In this document: positions 13,745-64,000 of the stretch, piece after piece | Position numbering within the stretch: position 1 is the first letter of the stretch | Layout: every line of letters starts with the position of its first letter | Source: Hypanus sabinus | Taxonomy: Eukaryota | NCBI RefSeq assembly: GCF_030144855.1 | Contig: NC_082708.1 | Coordinates: 127,286,001 to 127,350,000 of the forward strand | Reading direction: 5' to 3' | DNA length: 64,000 nt | Made by a program: the position numbers and the translations under genes | The notes under the pieces: model-generated | Databases searched by the model: none | Told to the model about the DNA's origin: nothing | Seen by the model: only the letters and a program-made list of their open reading frames with translations

Positions 13745-15912
13745 TGCTGGTACACCAAGCCTGAAAAATGTGAATTCCATAAAGAGCAGGTGTCGTTTTT
13801 GAGCTGTATACTTACCCCATCCAGTGTTGAAATGGACCCCAGTAAAGTTCAGGCAGTTGCAGAGTGGCCCAAATCATCTACAGTCAACCAGGTATGGCGC
13901 TTCATGGGGTTTGCAAACTTTAATCACTGCATAATCCAGAATTTCAGCTCTCTCACGGCTCCAATTAACACACTCACCTCGGCAGGATTCCATTGGACGG
14001 ACGATGCCGACCAAGCATTTTCCGAGCTGAAGGGATGTTTCACCTCTGCCCCGCTGTTGCAACACCCAGACCCATCTCAGCCAATCAATGTCAAAGTGGA
14101 GGAATCCGATGTTGGCATTGGAGCTGTCCTCTCTCTGTGCTCATCTGTGGATAGCCGGCTGCCCCCTTATGCTTTTCTTTCCCATCGCTTGACTCCAGCC
14201 GAGAGGATTGATGACGTTGGGAACCGAGTGCTTCGGGCTGTCAAGGAGGCCCTGGCGGAATGGCGACACTGGCTGGAGGGGGCAGAGCATCCATTCTTGG
14301 TCTGGACAGAACCTCTCCTGTATTCAGGATGCTAAGAGACTCAACTCTCATCAAGCCCGGTGGGCTCTCTTCTTCACATGGTTCAATTTTGTCTCCATTT
14401 ATTGTCCAGGCAGCAAGAATACAAAGGCTGAAGCTCTCTTCTGGCAGTTCAACAGATCTGAGGACAATGCTGATCCAGACCCCATTGTTCCTCACTCGTG
14501 TATCGCTGCTCCAGTGATCTGGGGAATAGAGGCAGAGGTGAGGGCCGCCCAACAATCAGATCCAGGCCTGGATGGGGAACCTCCCAACCAGCTGTTTGTC
14601 CCTGCTGCGGCGCTTTCCAAAGTGTTGGAATGGGGTCACTTCTCCCATCTGGCTGGATATCCGGGAATTCAATGTACTCAGAAGTTTATAAGGAGACAAT
14701 TTTGGTGGTCATCTATGTCCCAGGATGCCCACGACTTTGTATCTGCCTGTCCCACCTGCGCTCAGAACAAGTCATCACATCAGCGTCCTGCAGGTCTGTA
14801 ATGTCCACGGCCTGTACCCCACTGCCCCTGGTCCCACCTCTCAGTAGATTTCATCACTGGTCTGCCCCCGTCTAATGGAAACGCCACCATTTTGATCGTT
14901 GCGGATCGATTTTCCAAGGCTGCCCACTTCATCGCCCTCCCCAAGCTCCCATTGGCTCGTGAGACTGCCACACTCATGGTTCAACATGTGTTCAGGCTCC
15001 ATGGCTTTCCTCAAGACATACTGTCTGATCATGAACCACAGTACACTTCCCGTTTTTGGAAGGCTTTCTGCTCTCTTGTAGGAGCCACGTCCAGCCTTTT
15101 GTCTGGCTTCCATCCCCAATCTAATGGCCAGACTGAGAGGGTGAAACAGGAGTTGGGAGACAACTCTGTGCTGCCTTGCCTCTTCCAACCCCCACATGCT
15201 GGAGCTCCCAATTGGTTTGGGCAGAGATCGCCCACAATAACCTCCAGTCGTCTCCACCAGTATGTCTCTCTTTGAATGCCAGAAGGGATTCCAGCCCCTG
15301 CTCTTCCCTGATCAGGAGATCAACGTAGGAGTTCCTGCTACTGAACAGCTGATCCAGCACTACAAGCGCTCCTGGAGACGAGCCGAGGATTCTCTGCTGC
15401 GTGCCCAGAAACAGCATTCCCGGCAGACTGTTCGGCTCCGTCGACAGATAGGGCCATTCAAGCCAGGAGAGGGGATCTGGTTGGCATCAAGTGATCTTCC
15501 CCTGAAAGTCGAGAACCGGAAATTGGCACCGCGCTACGTGGGACCGTTTGTAGTGGAAAAGGCTGTCAAGAAGGTGTCGTATAGATTGCATCTACCAACA
15601 TCACTGAAGATCCACCCAGTATTCCATGTTTCCTAGCTCAAGCCGGTTATTACCTCTCCCCTGGCCCCAGTCAGTCCACCTTCCCCTCCTCCCTGCCTGG
15701 TAGAAGGTTCCCTTGTCTATGCAATGCAGCACCTCCTGGCATCTCGCTGGGAATGTGGTAAGGTCCAGTACTTTGTGGACTGGGAATGGCATGGCCCGGA
15801 AGAATGTACTTGGATCCCAGCAAAGGATATCTGGGACAAGTCGCTGATCTGGGTCTTCCAGCAGACACGGATCCATAGCGCCTCAGGGGCTGTGCCTAGA
15901 GAGGGGGTTCCC
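13745..15912 (+). pseudogene. pol: Chromovirus (V-clade/Sushi-like) Gypsy pol relic: RT C-terminus, RNase H, integrase, GPY/F module, chromodomain
   Basis: KPEKCEFH..MDPSKVQAVAEWP, DVGIGAVLS, HLAGYPG..CPTC (HHCC), [51 protein letters not shown]; several frameshifts. Confidence 0.95.
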
Positions 15913-30700: not shown

Positions 30701-31741
30701 AGGATTTGACATTAGCATTACAAACAGCAATGCTTTATCACACCAATGATAAGGGTAATTCAATTTCTAGGAATTGTTGCTTTAAAGTTAATTCAAGATC
30801 TCAGCTTTCAATCAACATTTAAAAACCTTTTCTTTTCTCTCTTTTCCCATGTTTACTAAAGACATTTAAATCTCATATCAAAGACACAGTTCGGAACAGA
30901 GGAGGAGGGTGTGTTGTGAGGTCATTTACCTCAGCTGTTCATAATTGTATTATAAACAGTTGGGAGAGATTGAAAATTGTTTATGAATATCAGCAATCTC
31001 CTGATGTTCACTCACTGCCAATGATTCGTTATGACTCAGAGATAGCTTGCGCAGTAAATTTAGTTTGTTTTGATTCAGTAGAATTTAATAGGTGCATTAA
31101 GAGCAGTATAATGTAGGTGAAAGGCCAACAAAGCTGCTCGCAGGACAGAACCTGATTGTGTATTGTATGAACCACAGTACCTAAATTGTCCTTTGTTCAG
31201 TGGTCTATTGCCAGAAAATTAACAGCACACTACAGATGATAACAATTTTGCAGCTCGTACAAAATTGACTGCCCAGAAAGTAAATTAAGAATTGAATCAG
31301 ATTTTTTTTATCTACACGTACGACCATCTAAGATCGACTTCATCTTCAAGCTATCTTTATAGCTATTATTGTGCACATGTTTAAATTACCTAGAAAATAA
31401 GGCCAGATGGAAACTACAATGCAAGGTCATGGAGAGGACAGAGTGAGTCAAATGGATTTGCCCTTTCCTTTTGGTGCATGTAATAAGCTGTAACATTCAT
31501 TGCCTTTTTCTATTAGATTGAATTTACCTGCTAAGCAATATAATATAGATTTCTGAGTAACTTAATTGAAACATCACAATTTGACAATTCCTGCCATTGT
31601 ATTCCTGTTGAATCATATTTATATATAGTATTTCACACCATTCTTTTTCCAAAAGTGAACTGCATGCACGTTAAATAAAGCCAGAGGTGATCTCCTTGAG
31701 TTGGATGGTTTGCGTCAGTGTAAAAAGAAATCACTCCAAGA

Positions 31742-52890: not shown

Positions 52891-54924
52891 TAAATACCAT
52901 ATTTAAAAAAGCATATGGATTACTTGATGAACAAAGCATGGAAGATAGGAGTGGAGAATTATGCTGGAACTCAATAAAATGCAAGTTAAGTTACATCTTG
53001 AGTACTGTGTACCATCCTGGTTATCACATGACAGGATTTGATGGTCAAAAAAGGTCTCCTTTAGTGTTATAAATTTGCATAACATCACAATTCTATCTTC
53101 AGGCGATTGAGCCAGGAAATTACATCAAAATGAGCCAAGCATACCCTTGTTGTTTTAACTGTGAAGAAAACACAGTGCCATTTGATTTTCTATAATCTAA
53201 ACTGGGTGACTCTATTCACCCACCAGAAAGATTTTAACATTCTGTATGTGCATCAGTTATCTGCATCTGCTTTATCTTTTTGCACTTTTATTTTCTAGCT
53301 TCAGGCTCCCAATGAATATCACTGGAAATCAAAAACAGGGAGCTTCTGAATCAATCCTTGTTATTAACTTATTAATTGGAGAGGATGGGAGAATGCACCA
53401 CAGATAAGGCATCCCTTCAGATTCATCATGCCATTGTTCACTCCTGGTTGTAGCTTCTGTTGCCTTTTAGTGTTTAAATTCCTAGATTCCTTCAGTGAAA
53501 AATTGATATATAAATATTGGAGCAGACAGTTCCCTTGCTGAAATTCCAAAAGATCTGACAGTGAAACAGACACCTCAGGCACATACTCATAACCTTTCCC
53601 TACAAGTCAGAAGAAGACAACATACAAGGGTGCCTCAGACAAGCTGCCATTGCAACCATTTTCAAGATTGCAGATAAATCCAATTGTAGTAACCCCTACC
53701 ACAGAGACATTCCTGACATAAGGAAGGACATTACAAGCGTCCTTCTGGACCATCTCCCCCTTGTGACCAATGAGTAGCTCCTTGTGTAGTCCATTCACCT
53801 AGAAATGCAACATACATCATCTTAACCATGCAACAAATACCCGAGAAATGCAAATAACAGCAAGACATTATGTGTCCTTTATTTCCTTTCTAAAGACTGT
53901 TTTAGTCTATTGAGAGCAGGTGCAGAGAATTCTTTTCAAATATGATTGCTATTCAATGTCCACCTCCGTTGTACATCAGCTACGTGATTGTGTACAAGCT
54001 TTCTTTTCTACCAATGGTCAACACAGACTAATGCAGATCAGACATGGCTGTGTTATCATGCAACACATCTTAATATAAAAAAACCACCCGTGTTCAGTTT
54101 TGGATTAAACAATGGGATGAAATCCAAATGCATCTCAGATCTCAATGATCAACTACACCAATGAAATAATTTTGCCGTCTATTGAGACATTGAATGAGCA
54201 TTTTATACATTCTATGTATAATATCTGTTCCTAAGATGTCTGTCCTGAAATGCTGTTGCATCTGACCGAGAGTAAAAGAGGCTTTATGTTTTGTGGAAAT
54301 GCAACATTTCAATTTATGGAGACATAACAGATTCTGAAACAGTATTTAATGTATCACTCATTTGTAACCATAAACTGAGCAACGCTCAAAAAGGGTAAAT
54401 TAACCATTTGAGATCTCAGGCTGCACATCGTAGCATGTGGGCTGTGTTAACCCTCCAGGAAGAGCGAATCAGTTTAAATTGTATCAATTTTTTCCTATTT
54501 GCTTGGTTTCCTTGTTTTAATTTAATTAGCCTGAAGGTCCAGAAAGGGATATCATATCTTTGCCTTGTGGATGAATAAACTGAAATCTGAATACTTAAAC
54601 CAGCTTGCATTCTAAGAAACACATACCATAATGGGAAATTTTATATAAGTCTGAGTGAGCTGTGATTAATGACAATTATTTGAAGTTTCTCCTGCTTCAC
54701 CAATTTTCCATTGATCTCTGCCAAAATCATGGTAGCATATTGGGAAATCCCAATGAAATGTCCAAAAAATGGTTTAGCCACTTCTGAAACAACAATAATG
54801 TTTAATCTTTTAACAGTAATTCCACTATGTAATATGTCTGGCTAATATATTCAGCCTCTCCAAAATGGTGATTTTTTTCTTGATGTTACATTTCACTGAC
54901 TTTGACAGCAGTCAGAACTTATTC

Positions 54925-54973
54925 AACTCTGCCATGGATGGTCCCAAGCCTTCTGCATAAGGAGGAGGGATGG
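54925..54973 (+). ncRNA. Twister ribozyme (P1-type), 3' cleavage product, partly decayed
   Basis: AA-CTCT-GCC…GG-TCCCAAGC-C…GGAG-GA-GGG: P2 CUCU/GGAG, L4 UCCCAAGC, CCC/GGG pseudoknot. P4 degenerate; 5' P1 strand absent. Confidence 0.8.
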
Positions 54974-55191
54974 ACATGGGGCCAGCAACCCCATCCCATA
55001 AAAAACCCAGATCTACAGAAATACCAACAGAATCTCTAAAGGCCTCTTGCCTGTGAGAGGATCACCAAGGAAATGGGCTACACCTGGGGACAGTCTTGAA
55101 AGACTGGACCAGGACAGAGGACCAACGAGCTACTATCAGCAGCCCATATCCCAGTAGGCATGATGGGCATAACTACAGTAACTAACTAACT
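54925..55191 (+). mobile_element. Non-autonomous RTE-type retroposon (5' leader + last RT-ORF codons + (TAAC)n tail)
   Basis: Perfect TSD AGAACTTATTC(A) at 54914 and 55192; 3' part translates MGYTWGQS*KTGPG / LERLDQDRG (RTE C-terminus WxxLERLAQDR). Confidence 0.88.
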
Positions 55192-56539
55192 AGAACTTAT
55201 TCACAGATAAGCAATTCATTCTGATCGGGATTGAGTGCTGTGCAATTTGATATGAATAAAAGAATGCACATTCTTCAGCTTTTAAAACACGCACATACAA
55301 TTTTTTTCATAGAAAGCATCTAGTAAAAAAATAACAGAATCATAATACTTATTGCTCTGAATAATTAGATCATCTCAAAACATAGGGAAAATTATTGTCT
55401 TTGCCACTTTGTGAGATAGATCAAACATCCTTATCATAATCCATCTGATTTTCATTTCTTCGAAATCTAATCAATTTTTACAAGTCTGTGCAATTTTTTC
55501 CCTTCAGATTATACTGCTCAGAAATTTACTACATGCAGTCCAACTTTGACCAAATTAACATTTACTTTTAACTTCTTTGCAACATTTTTTTTTGTGATTT
55601 TCATTTTGATTGTTCCATGCAACGGTCCTGGATGCGCTCAGGAAGCTGAAATGCTTACAAAAGGCAAGATGTTAAATTGGGAAAGCCTGAAGCATTGCTT
55701 GACCTTTGCTTTTCCACTGCTGAAGAAGTAAACTTGCATTTAAAGTATCAATGCTTCCAACATTGCAAACCCCCTTGAAAGCTTTACAATGATAAAACGT
55801 GAAGCTGACAAAGTGCGCCTGTCTGCAGATTGAACACAAAAAGGCTACAGTTCAGGGTTTTCTAAGGCTCTAACAAATGCAATGAAAGCCTCCAGTGTTG
55901 TTGTTTAGAGCCTTAATTTTCCATAAAAATGTCCATCTCTTGTCCCACTACAATGTCTTCCATTACATTTTACATTTTATTCCTTTTGTTAAATATAAAA
56001 TTTTCAAACACAAATTTCTCTCAGATTTTGAATGACCGGATTTAGTTTGTTAAAAACATATCACAAGGTATAAACACTGTGATAAAAGTTGCAAATGGAT
56101 TGTTCTCTGGTACTATTGTTACAGCTGGGACATATCATTTAACATAATAGGCCCCTCTGCTTTCTTAAGGTTTCTGTTACATCTTGGACTTGAAGAGAAG
56201 GTTTGAACGGTTGGTTATATGCATGAAAATTGATCAGGTTTGACACAATAGAGACATAATTCACTTAGATATCTTCAAAGGAACAGCAGAGTGCTTTCCT
56301 ATTTAAAATTTGCTTAACAAATGATTTTCCATATTTTACTAGTGATTTAGCACCCGTCAGAAAATCTTCTAATTTAAGTGGATTTTTATTCACTCCAGCA
56401 TCTTCTTTAACAGTGAAAAAGAATCCCCCAAATGATACAAACATAGAATTCTCATGCTAATCTCACTGGTCTGAAAGTAATGCTTCTTACTTATTCATAG
56501 AGCGGTGAAGTAGCACGAGACCTCTTTGCACTGAAACTG

Positions 56540-60517: not shown

Positions 60518-62900
60518 TCACTGCGATCTACGTAGCACCAGCTGTGATTGCACAGATGCCGGCGACATTGGTGATTGCACAGGAGACAGAGGTTGTGCTG
60601 GTTCCAGCCCACTAGGCGCCAGTGATCCCTCACGCATGTGCAAGGTGCCTGGTATATATGCGTACGAAACGCCCGGTATATAAGTGTCGTGAGGAGTCTG
60701 TGTAGGGCCTGGTGAGCGCGGTGTCACCTCGGGTACAGGGTTCATAGTTACCGGAGAGAGTTCAGGGTAGTGGTCTGCTGCACCTACGGGTGCCAGGTTG
60801 CGGATGGAGACCGTGTCCTCCCGCCCATCACGTAAGACCACGTAGGCATACTGGGAGTTCGCATGTAGAAGGTGAACCCTCTCGACCAGCGGGGAGTATT
60901 TATTACTCCTCACATGTTTCTGGAGCAGCACTGGCCCCGGGGACATCAGCCAAACTGGTAGGGTGGTCCCAGTGGCAGACTTCCTGGGAAAAGAGAATAG
61001 GCGTTTGTGAGGGGTGGCATTGGTGGATGTACATAACAGAGAGCGGATAGAGTGGAGTGCCTCAGGGAGGACCTCCTGCCATCGAGAGACCGGCTACCCT
61101 TTTGACTTAAGGGCTAAAAGTGTGGCCTTCCACACCGTGGCATTCTCCCGCTCCACCTGTCCATTACCCCGGGGATTATAACTCGTGGTCCAACTAGTAG
61201 CAATGCCCCTAGCTAGCAGGTACTGGCACAGCTCGTCACTCATAAAGGAGGACCCTCTATCACTGTGGATATAGCAGGGATACCCGAACAGAGTGAAGAG
61301 CTGGCGCAGGGCTTTTATGACAGACGTGGTAGTGGTGTCGGGGCAGGGAATGGCAAAGGGGAACCGTGAGTACTCGTTGATAACATTGAGAAAATAGACA
61401 TTGCAGTCGGTGGAGGGAAGGGGGCCCTTAAAGTCAACACTCAGTCGCTCAAAAGGGCGGGTGCCCTTGATAAGTTGTGCCGTGTCAGGACAGTAGAAGT
61501 GCGGTTTGCACTCAGCGCAAATTTGGCAGTCCCTGGTCATCGTCCTGATGTCCTCCAGGGAGTACGGCAGGTTCCAGGCTTTCACGAAATGGTAAAATCG
61601 GGTGACCCCTGGATGGCAAAGTTGTGCATGAAGGGCGTATAGCTGGTCGAGCTGTGCGCTAGCACACGTACCCCGGGATAGGGCATCAGGGGGCTCATTG
61701 AGTCTGCAAGGCCGGTACAGGATGTCATAGTTGTAGGTGGAGAGTTCTATTCTCCACCGCAAAATCTTATCATTTTTGATTTTGCCCCGCTGTTGGTTGC
61801 TGAACATGAACGCAACCGAGCGCTGGTCGGTCAGCAAGGTGAACCTTTTGCCGGCGAAATAGTGTCTCCAGTGCCTAACAGCCTCCACTATGGCCTGGGC
61901 TTCTTTCTCCACCACAGAGTGCCGAATTTCAGAGCCTTGGAGGGTACGAGAAAAGAATGCTACTGGCCTGCCTTCCTGATTGAGGGTAGCAGCCAGAGCG
62001 AAATCGGAGGCATCACACTCCACTTGGAAGGGAATGGTCTCGTCCACCGCATGCATCGTTGCTTTGGCAATGTCCCCTTTAATGCAGCTGAAGGCCGCGC
62101 AAGCCTCGGCAGAGAGGGGAAAAGTGGTAGACTTGACCAGGGGGCGGGCCTTGTTTGCGTAATGGGGGACCCATTGGGCGTAATAGGAAAAAAAACCCAG
62201 GCACCGTCTGAGGGCTTTGAGAGTGGTGGGAAGAGGGAGTTCTAACAGGGGGCGCATACGGTCGGGATCAGGGCCAATGACCCCGTTTTCCATGACATAC
62301 CCAAGGATAGCAAGGCGGGTGGTTCCGAACACACACTTGTCCCTGTTATAAGTAAGGTTCAGAGCTGCGGCCACTTGGAGAAATCGTTGGAGGTTGGCAT
62401 CGTGATCTGGCCAGTTGTGACCACAGACGGTGATGTTATCCAGATAGGGAAATGTGGCCTGCAGTTGGTACTGGTCCATTATCCGGTCCATTTCCTTCTG
62501 GAAGACAGAGACACCATTCGTGACACCGAAAGGGACGCGCAGGAAGTGATAGAGCCTGCCGCCTGCCTCGAAGGAGGTGTAGGGGCGGTCCTCTGGGTGG
62601 ATGGGGAGCTGGTGATAAGCAGATTTCAGATCTATTGTCGAGTACACCTTGTACTGAGCTATCTGGTTGACCATATCCGCGATGCGGGGTAGGGGGTACG
62701 CGTCAAGCTGCGTGAACCTATTGATGGTTTGACTATACTCCACCACCATCCTATTTTTCTGCCCAGTCCGAACAACAACCACCTGGGCCCTCCAAGGGCT
62801 TGTGCTTGGCTCAATGATCCCCTCCCTGAGCAGCCGCTGCACCTCTGACTGAATGAAGGCCCTGACCCCGCGCTGTACCTCCTGCTTTTAGTTGCCACAG
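60518..62900 (-). pseudogene. pol: Gypsy (Mag-like clade) pol: RT, RNase H, integrase; one in-frame TAG at 61094-96 and a 1-nt frameshift near 62868
   Basis: 582-aa ORF: STSPW, IDLKSAYHQ, PFGV, YLDN, CDASD..EKEAQAI..TDQ, H-H-CxxC, SVD/HSD/VER. ORF 60518-60946 is in frame across the stop. Confidence 0.96.
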
Positions 62901-62915
62901 ATTTACAGTCGGGGG

Positions 62916-64000
62916 TCAGGTTGGTGAACAGCGGTGGGGGTTGGACCTTGAGGGTGGAGAGACTGCAAGTGGTGTCGGTAGCGCAGCTGTCGGCATGGTG
63001 CTGGATGGGACGTGTGGGCCCGTGTGTGTGTGTGTGGTCAGTAGTGATGAAGTCCCACAGAACTGAGGATTCCTGACAGTGAGTGGTGGGAGGGGCCCAT
63101 CATATACCATAGTCACACTTTCGAGATGACTCTGGAAGTCCAGCCCCAGTAGCACAGGTGCGCACAGTTTAGGCATGACCAGTGGCGCAAAGTTCCGATA
63201 TTCTGTGCCTTGCACCACCAATGTTGCTACACGACCCACCCGGATGTCTGCGGAATGCGACCCAGAAGCCAAATTGATCCTCCGACTTACCGGCCGTGTT
63301 GCGAGTCCACAGCGTTGCACTGTGTCCAGGTGAATAAAACTCTCAGTGCTGCCCGTGTCAAACAGGCAGCTAGTCCTGTGTCCTTCCACCAGGATGTCCA
63401 TCATTGACCTTGCGAGCTGGTGTGGGGCGCTTTGGTCGAGGGTTACGGTGGCCAGAGTTGAGCCATCAGGGTACCAGGTAAGCATCGGAGGGTCGGGGGT
63501 GGGGCATGCTGACGCCGACAAAGATGGCCGCCCACATCTGGGCATGCAAGATGGCGGCCCCCATGTCTCACCTGCAGCACTGCACTCCGCTCGTAGTTTA
63601 GACTTACAGACCTTGGCGAAATGGCCCCGCTTTCCACAGCTGGAGCAGGTCGCTTCTCGCGCCCAGCTGCATTTTTGGGGGTGCTTTCTGAGTCCACAGA
63701 AGTAACAAAGCACGGGCTTCTGATGGGCCGCAGCTGTGGTCGGGTTCGGGGAGCTCGTGGAATCGCGACTGGCAGCGGCGTTGGTGAATTCGCTCCCGGG
63801 AGCCGGCGGTGGTGGGGTCTGAGGTGTCCATGGAACCGGCGGGGAATCGCGCGACTGGACAGCGTCAGCGTTGTGCAGCGCAGCTTCCAGCATGTCGGCC
63901 ATCTCAATCGCCAAGCGTAAGGTAAGATCGGCTTTTTCCAGCAGCCGCTGGCGCACTTACACTGACCTCAGTCCTGTCACAAAGGCGCCTCGTACTAGCA
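62916..64000 (-). pseudogene. gag: Gypsy (Mag-like) gag C-terminus + aspartic protease; continues beyond the window
   Basis: Double knuckle CYFCG..H..C..CSSCGKRGHFAKVC; LFDTGS; VLLGLDF. Confidence 0.94.

Follow-up and report, generated by a model that had tools for sequence, protein, structure and literature searches.

With reference to the 64,000-nucleotide stretch of Hypanus sabinus contig NC_082708.1 studied here (positions 127,286,001 to 127,350,000; hereafter the window, with positions counted from its first letter), the question to be answered is what kind of element was inserted at 54925-55191, and what defined its 5' end. The original prediction, made from the letters of the window, had described this insert as a miniature retroposon headed by a twister ribozyme, with the cleavage site of the ribozyme as the 5' end of the element. 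According to our analysis, the insert is in all likelihood an old, inactive, non-autonomous and internally deleted derivative of a non-LTR retrotransposon (one without long terminal repeats) of the RTE clade, similar to Perere-3 of Schistosoma mansoni, with a 5' end defined by a twister. The derivative consists of the 5' untranslated region (UTR) of its parent and about the last 125 nucleotides (nt), and the 5' end of the parent is a compact type-P1 twister that lacks the P3 stem.

The insert is 267 bp long and is bracketed by an 11-bp target-site duplication, AGAACTTATTC, at 54914-54924 and 55192-55202 on the plus strand, so that the perfect duplications and the length of about 266 bp claimed earlier were confirmed. 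As AGAACTTATTC(A) can be read at 54914-54925 and a second time at 55192-55203, the 5' start had been given with an ambiguity of one nucleotide. The relatives and the family consensus all begin with AA, from which it follows that the duplication measures 11 bp and that A54925 is the first nucleotide of the element; the start at the first A therefore stands, and the ambiguity itself is settled. Taken alone, the duplication was rejected as evidence, as it is not statistically remarkable in the window, where 35 direct repeats of at least 11 bp occur at 100-600 bp spacing and block shuffles yield 6-31 matching 11-mers. It becomes significant because its inner edges match the microsatellite tail and the independently defined 5' end of the family, the 5' copy ending exactly at the boundary obtained from related contigs and from our own model R1 (both described below).

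Within these edges, the insert opens with AACTCTGCC and closes with AGTAACTAACTAACT, its far end being composed of RTE codons and (TAAC)3. All its parts lie on the plus strand, namely the compact P3-less twister-like head (54925-54973), recognised by Rfam twister-P1, by model R1 and by identity to the heads of the related loci L033 and L122; a conserved hairpin directly 3' of the GAGGG motif (54971-54998), recognised by covariation, by the minimum free energy (MFE) fold of relatives and by the R1 alignment; the rest of the 5' UTR of the parent RTE (54999-55066), which aligns with the leaders of L033 and L122; about the last 40 codons of the RTE open reading frame (ORF; 55067-55185); and the (TAAC)3T microsatellite tail (55179-55191). 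The remainder of the 5' UTR contains an A run, a CTACAGAAA..CAACAGAA motif and the motif CCTGTGAGAGGA (CCTG-GAGAGGA), which in L121 from Schistosoma mekongi and in L122 from the snail Littorina saxatilis adjoins the annotated start codon from the 5' side. The codon part was identified by tblastn against RTE proteins and by 82% identity between nt 149-198 of the element and L122 3702-3750, about 100 nt before the end of the L122 ORF. It reads ..TKEMGYTWGQ..LERLDQDRG..PYPSRHDGHN.. and ends with PYPSRHDGHNYSN*, frameshifts and stops being present, and its terminal stop TAA at 55183-55185 falls within the tail repeat, as it does in the relatives, which have tails of (TAAG)n, (TGAT)n, (AAG)n or (GAT)n. 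These translated comparisons and the L122 alignment bear out the earlier reading of the 3' part as the last RTE codons with a tail. The absence of a tRNA head was likewise confirmed, as a permissive Rfam scan of 54800-55300 (E up to 10), together with ARAGORN for tRNA, disclosed no tRNA, 5S, 7SL or hepatitis delta virus (HDV)-like match. No second copy of the element was found within the window.

In RNA letters, the head is laid out as AA-CUCU-GCC...GGUCCCAAGC...GGAG-GAGGG. When aligned to the Rfam twister-P1 model (RF03160) by cmscan, the U^AA of the model falls on C54924^A54925-A54926, which places the scissile bond between C54924 and A54925, with A54925-A54926 on its 3' side. P2 pairs 54927-54930 with 54961-54964 (CUCU/GGAG, three Watson-Crick pairs and one G-U), and it is followed by GCC at 54931-54933 and by the loop GGUCCCAAGC at 54940-54949, read as GGTCCCAAGCC at 54940-54950, after which comes a decayed P4. 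Farther on, GGAGGAGGG at 54961-54969 includes GAGGG at 54965-54969, and the nominal 3' strand of P1, AUGG, occupies 54970-54973. The P3 stem is deleted, and in this copy the A-rich joining strand has shrunk to AA. The conserved core is nevertheless in register, comprising the AA 3' of the scissile bond, GCC, the GGUCCCAAGC loop, the A-rich strand and GAGGG, and by inspection the pseudoknot partners T1 (CCC with GGG of GAGGG) and T2 (GC with GC) are intact. As the P2, T1 and T2 segments of the relatives were preset by the search pattern, they give no measure of covariation there.

Several points weigh against our reading of the insert, and they are set out together here. The twister-P1 match at 54920-54973 (+; cmscan in E-value mode), the one meaningful match of the permissive scan, reaches 25.6 bits (E 0.0029), below the gathering score of 67.2 bits, and an Rfam scan at the gathering threshold returned nothing anywhere in the window. 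P4 in the window copy amounts to a weak three-pair reading with a long loop, its pairs being broken in the cmscan and R1 alignments alike, in agreement with the decay of P4 noticed earlier; because P4 is destroyed, this copy is no longer able to cleave. P1 is largely unpaired, as the flank UAUU can pair with AUGG at 2 of 4 positions at most by inspection, and cmscan flags a non-standard pair in it. The twister variants assayed in the published work on Perere-3 are P3-bearing schistosome ones, and compact P3-less RTE heads are not among them (Liu et al. 2021; PMC8501958). With regard to an autonomous RTE from a ray, searches with related RTE ORFs gave no elasmobranch-labelled protein among the best 120. 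In the presumptive RNA contigs, family heads lie within longer contigs that are silent on RNA ends and on cleavage, and the window stretch occurs in none of the runs recorded as RNA. Lastly, only a few bridging contigs point to amplification in the short form.

Concerning the first of these points, the Rfam gathering score is no fair test of membership, because intact compact heads are also missed by it (20 foreign loci). Among the metagenome loci, P3-bearing heads score 59-68 bits and compact P3-less heads 37-50 bits on the Rfam model, and two members of the same head lineage lie above gathering, S. mekongi L121 with 72.7 bits and L001 with 68.1 bits. The gathering threshold thus penalises a missing P3 and P1, and not a missing core. 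The covariance model R1, for which we used 15 compact heads of foreign origin and left out the window copy, matches 54925-55011 end to end (1-88) with 78.4 bits and an E-value of 2.7e-19 in the 64-kb window, only the P4 pairs being broken in its alignment. The window copy is also 82% identical to the L033 head and leader over the first 100 nt (blastn), and 78% identical to the Littorina L122 head over element nt 1-81. A chance resemblance in a low-complexity, purine-rich stretch might be argued from the Rfam score, and from the fact that, if one mismatch is allowed, about 0.9 chance occurrences of GGTCCCAAGCC are to be expected in a window. Yet that explanation is refuted by the L033, L122 and R1 matches, with homology to the heads of full-length RTEs running end to end over 88 nt, and by relatives that grade continuously up to 72.7 bits, so that we give it practically no credence. 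Homology of the head to genuine twister-P1 ribozymes that top RTE elements is therefore supported by these comparisons. The twister identity originally claimed is upheld by them, and the Rfam check proposed for it gave a match at the cleavage site, with a score short of gathering. Another R1 match in the window, at 30870-30951 (+; 18.8 bits, E about 0.003), has GGAGGAGGG and the hairpin without the GGUCCCAAGC loop; it is probably due to chance and was rejected.

The 5' boundary of the family coincides exactly with the scissile bond. Contigs from four, and then five, related organisms were aligned to the region at 80% likeness, and 441-784 contigs per DNA run matched the element region. Among them, the match begins at 54925 in 24-31 contigs per ray genome, the parts upstream of it being AT-rich and mutually unrelated (agreement 0.39-0.41), which places the 5' boundary of the family at this nucleotide, the first A after the scissile bond. 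'Before 54925' is also the sole loose end of low agreement in the contigs; the best-supported loose ends are internal, being due to indels in the window copy, and the family head can be read from their consensus. Following P2, this family consensus runs (G/A)CC-AUGGA-CGG-UCCCAAGC-CCGG-CUGUGA, then AAGGAGGAGGG-U-UGG-G, and it restores both the UUGG after GAGGG and P4 (CGG/CCG), the latter also being intact in L033 and L122. Contigs spanning both insert junctions at 96-99% identity were observed in organisms A, B, D and E, and since the insertion lies at the same locus in them, it is older than their divergence. No empty site, that is, a contig skipping 54925-55191, was seen among the contigs of the related organisms.

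The same boundary was observed in more distant relatives. Metagenome contigs were scanned for CTCC-N-CC, a gap, GGTCCCAAGCCCGG, a gap and GGAGGAGGG, and 119 loci were returned. AA precedes the head in 94 of the 102 unique metagenome heads, and the base before AA is not conserved (T in 43/90). In five independent repeat families (5-9 members each), pairwise identity rises from 0.2-0.3 just upstream of AA to about 1.0 from AA on. Directly after many heads stands an open frame of about 1000 amino acids (aa) with Exo_endo_phos (APE), RVT_1 and DUF6451 domains, which is an RTE-type ORF; L033 is one of these loci. Two relatives from named organisms agree with this picture: L121 is a full-length element of 3.2 kb in S. 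mekongi with its duplication TAAACAACCACT adjoining AA, and L122 in L. saxatilis is a 3.18-kb element topped by a compact head of 40.4 bits, with the layout of the ray consensus, a duplication ACGCAAAAGAAC that adjoins AA and a (TGAT)n tail. The ray contigs, the five metagenome families and the schistosome and snail duplications together substantiate the claim that the 5' ends of copies lie at the first A after the scissile bond.

The kind of system to which the ray element belongs is known, and the novelty first attributed to a ribozyme-processed RTE system was overstated, as the mechanism has been published for Perere-3. Liu et al. (2021, NAR; PMC8501958) described twister variants at the 5' end of this S. 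mansoni element, which cleave in vitro and in reporters or in vivo, with the site mapped by 5' rapid amplification of cDNA ends (RACE); they are co-transcribed with the element, and the cleaved twister supports downstream translation. The duplications of Perere-3 adjoin the AA of the cleavage site, and (GTAA)n closes the element (PMC8501958). In the literature searched, this was the sole work linking twisters with retrotransposons, later papers citing it without extending it, and neither twister-headed RTEs in vertebrates nor ORF-less derivatives nor the hairpin were found described there; unspecified twister-like hits in vertebrate genomes are mentioned by Liu et al. (2021; PMC8501958). The ray element resembles Perere-3 in its type-P1 twister at the extreme 5' end with the duplication adjoining AA, in its P2 CUCC/GGAG followed by GAGGG-UUGG, in its tetranucleotide-repeat tail, and in its RTE protein lineage, in which schistosome, snail and fish copies share 60-74% aa identity. 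It adds some new features: its host, a batoid, is a vertebrate, its head is without P3 and joins P4 to P2 by a longer strand, the element is 267 bp without an ORF as against about 3.2 kb, and the tail is (TAAC)n instead of (GTAA)n. Cleavage was assayed for Perere-3, and for the ray head it is predicted by comparison.

Because the element fits it point for point, we adopted the published Perere-3 scheme. Presumably lacking a promoter of its own, the element would be transcribed within a longer host or read-through RNA, from which the twister would cut between the last nucleotide of the flank and the first A, giving an RNA that starts 5'-AA-CUCC. The endonuclease and reverse transcriptase of an RTE, acting in trans, would then recognise the 3' end with the last codons and the (TAAC)n tail, and target-primed reverse transcription would copy the RNA to its very 5' end and leave the 11-bp duplication. 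Self-cleavage of the compact variant, read-through transcription and mobilisation in trans are the steps that we infer. A uniform AA could also be produced by a fixed transcription start from an internal promoter, with the twister serving another role such as translation or RNA stability; the aid that the cleaved twister gives to downstream translation in the work of Liu et al. (2021) is in keeping with this. Against it, the boundary equals the scissile bond to the nucleotide in many families, in heads with and without P3, cleavage by the schistosome ribozymes occurs both in vitro and in vivo with the site mapped by 5' RACE, and Rfam found no RNA polymerase III (Pol III) type head, which makes an internal promoter a very improbable source of the common 5' end.

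Having taken cleavage by the twister as the preferred account of the 5' end, we turn to the miniature form. The original prediction had called the element 'SINE-like' (SINE, short interspersed element), and the part of this that stands is the 3' end shared with a partner long interspersed element (LINE); the Pol III promoter head, the other SINE trait, was not found. Full-length relatives could be aligned to the 5' ribozyme and UTR (54925 to about 55066) as well as to the 3' end (about 55067 to 55191), only about the last 40 codons are left, and the insert has no single ORF with APE and reverse transcriptase. The element is therefore the 5' UTR of its parent RTE fused to these last codons, a short internally deleted element (SIDE) and not a SINE, the SIDE label being preferred for lack of a Pol III head. 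The deletion junction is bracketed by contigs of longer relatives, in which the match breaks off at about 55046-55061 or sets in at about 55073. In two other ray genomes, two paralogous contigs of about 80-85% identity, with a divergence of about 16%, cross the junction, recognised among the related ray contigs as X6 record 20 (54925-55092) and X8 record 31 (54986-55122). One could suppose instead a one-off, dead-on-arrival product, in which a twister-headed RTE RNA of full length underwent an internal deletion (as by template switching in the course of reverse transcription) and gave rise to no propagating mini-family, and the matching contigs would stem from full-length or differently truncated RTEs. 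In most contigs the match is indeed confined to the head (as far as about 55061) or to the tail (about 55073 onwards), many different joints occur among them, and no complete second short copy is readable. We nevertheless consider such an accident unlikely, as the paralogous contigs bridge the junction and short duplication-flanked twister-headed elements recur in unrelated organisms. Elements of the latter kind were recorded in animal DNA borne by metagenomes as L065, L041, L096 and L048, of 107, 306, 503 and 573 bp, respectively, all flanked by duplications and with microsatellite tails. It seems that this RTE lineage yields miniature derivatives as a general by-product.

Short internally deleted elements with an HDV-like 5' ribozyme have been described for R2 (Eickbush and Eickbush 2012, as reported in PMC6765202). 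So far as that report describes them, the ray element resembles R2 SIDEs in being non-autonomous, in keeping the 5' ribozyme and the 3' end of a parent LINE, in having lost the ORF and in being presumably mobilised in trans; it differs in that its ribozyme is a twister and not HDV-like, its parent is RTE and not R2, and site-specific insertion and rDNA transcription are absent. HDV-like ribozymes also head RTE, baggins and L1Tc/NARTc elements (Ruminski et al. 2011; Sanchez-Luque et al. 2011, both as reported in PMC6765202). According to the same source, these too are promoter-less non-LTR elements with a 5' end cut from a co-transcript, and non-autonomous partners exist. An HDV-like ribozyme makes its cut at its own 5' boundary and requires no upstream sequence, unlike a type-P1 twister, which nominally needs an upstream P1 strand that is lost at each transposition.

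It was for this reason that the activity of any copy had been expected to depend on the flanking host sequence. Liu et al. (2021; PMC8501958) propose the target-site duplication as the source of the 5' strand of P1. In the flanks of 90 related copies, we found no enrichment for complementarity to UUGG, so that a restoration of P1 by the flanks was not borne out. As the 3' strand of P1 also pairs downstream, the dependence on host flank appears doubtful. This downstream pairing is the hairpin at 54971-54998, which is intact in the window copy: its outer stem pairs U71-G72-G73 with C96-C97-A98, its inner stem pairs 54976-54981 with 54989-54994, and its loop is CCAGCAA. It occupies the nucleotides that Rfam and Liu et al. 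(2021) assign to the 3' strand of P1 (UUGG after GAGGG). Its general layout consists of an outer stem of 3-4 pairs, a one-nucleotide bulge or small internal loop, an inner stem of 5-6 pairs and a CCAGCAA-like loop, followed by GUAAAA. In the ray contigs, no part of the family is more conserved than the hairpin, which is present from schistosome to snail to ray, the same hairpin standing after the head of S. mekongi L121.

Covariation of the hairpin was judged on 25-26 heads (alignments A1 and A2; loci L001-L122). On 25 sequences, 87.9% of the cells pair, as against 45-64% with the partners slid, and changes on both sides were noticed at 6 of the 10 hairpin pairs, for example from G-C to U-A in the outer stem in 5-7 sequences; the observed covariation was reached by no shuffle. 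RNAalifold independently predicts the same helices, and the hairpin is the MFE structure in single-sequence folds of three relatives. The folding energy of the hairpin alone is not significant (z -0.9 to -1.8), and its support therefore comes from covariation and not from thermodynamic folding. A twister can cleave in the absence of P3 and even of P1, as in rice Osa-1-4 and the P1-less mini-twister (cited as reference 79 by Liu et al. 2021; PMC8501958). Like these, the ray head is compact and P3-less, and its cleavage would be possible with little or no P1; they differ in that they are found outside retrotransposons and have no downstream hairpin on the 3' strand of P1. We tentatively suggest that the hairpin may replace P1 and so free cleavage from the flank. 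The wider form of this hypothesis, that the twisters borne by RTEs have a distinct architecture in which the UUGG strand bases the downstream hairpin (then U-AAAA), serving as a built-in P1 surrogate for cleavage independent of the insertion site, is a possible but less than probable reading. It offers a testable answer to how a ribozyme that loses an upstream helix strand at each jump could stay active. If true, independence from the flank would explain how this twister lineage could spread together with RTEs through flatworms, molluscs, amphioxus and fishes, rays among them, as well as the rise of miniature head-plus-tail parasites.

With regard to distribution, proteins 60-74% identical to one metagenome RTE ORF were detected in several Schistosoma species, in snails (Littorina saxatilis and Batillaria attramentaria), in amphioxus and in several fishes, the latter being lungfish, reedfish, loaches and a goby. 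Such aa identity across phyla suggests horizontal transfer among aquatic animals and their parasites. Our data also suggest that twister-headed RTEs are widespread in aquatic animals. By the ray element, the one published link between twisters and retrotransposition, which concerned a single flatworm, is extended to a vertebrate, to a head that is compact and lacks P3, and to ORF-less miniature derivatives, and many eukaryotic twister hits without an assigned function may simply be the 5' ends of such elements. For annotation, it matters that most such heads are missed by the Rfam gathering score.

Some further observations were made on the relatives. In the loach Paramisgurnus dabryanus, the RTE at L120 (1240-1420 and 4380-4520) is of the same protein lineage and keeps the leader hairpin and a (GAT)n tail, and no recognisable twister was detected in it (no Rfam match at E 0.01). 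Locus L101 carries minus-strand twisters at 400-454, 672-726, 2565-2619 and 2839-2893. They lie in two direct repeats of about 430-600 bp (343-773 and 2508-2940) that are 88-94% identical and 2166 bp apart, each holding two twisters 272-274 nt apart, with a conserved upstream flank ACAACATCCAGTAA. This arrangement resembles a retrozyme or a tandem array and not a 5'-terminal head, and the loci related to it are L015, L019, L070, L075, L094, L102, L114 and L115. In another twister family (L004, L012, L058, L060, L087, L095 and L107), the upstream flank is A-rich and conserved and P1 is genuine (AGUUA/UAACU), which places these twisters away from an insertion boundary and implies a genomic context other than that of the RTE heads. 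Three eukaryotic retrotransposon proteins, P0001, P0060 and P0130, stand under the names of bacterial metagenome-assembled genomes (MAGs; Cetobacterium sp., Kangiellaceae and Rhizobiales), and are probably host DNA that was binned into MAGs.

The window itself also harbors Gypsy-type sequences, namely an LTR retrotransposon ORF with protease, reverse transcriptase, RNase H and integrase at 61094-63956 (-), with 93% identity of its pol to Hypanus sabinus proteins, and an RNase H/integrase fragment at 13790-14801 (+). The Gypsy-type pol is 87-93% identical to Hypanus sabinus proteins, 84% to Mobula and 77-79% to catsharks, by which the cartilaginous-fish host suggested earlier was supported and narrowed down to a batoid.

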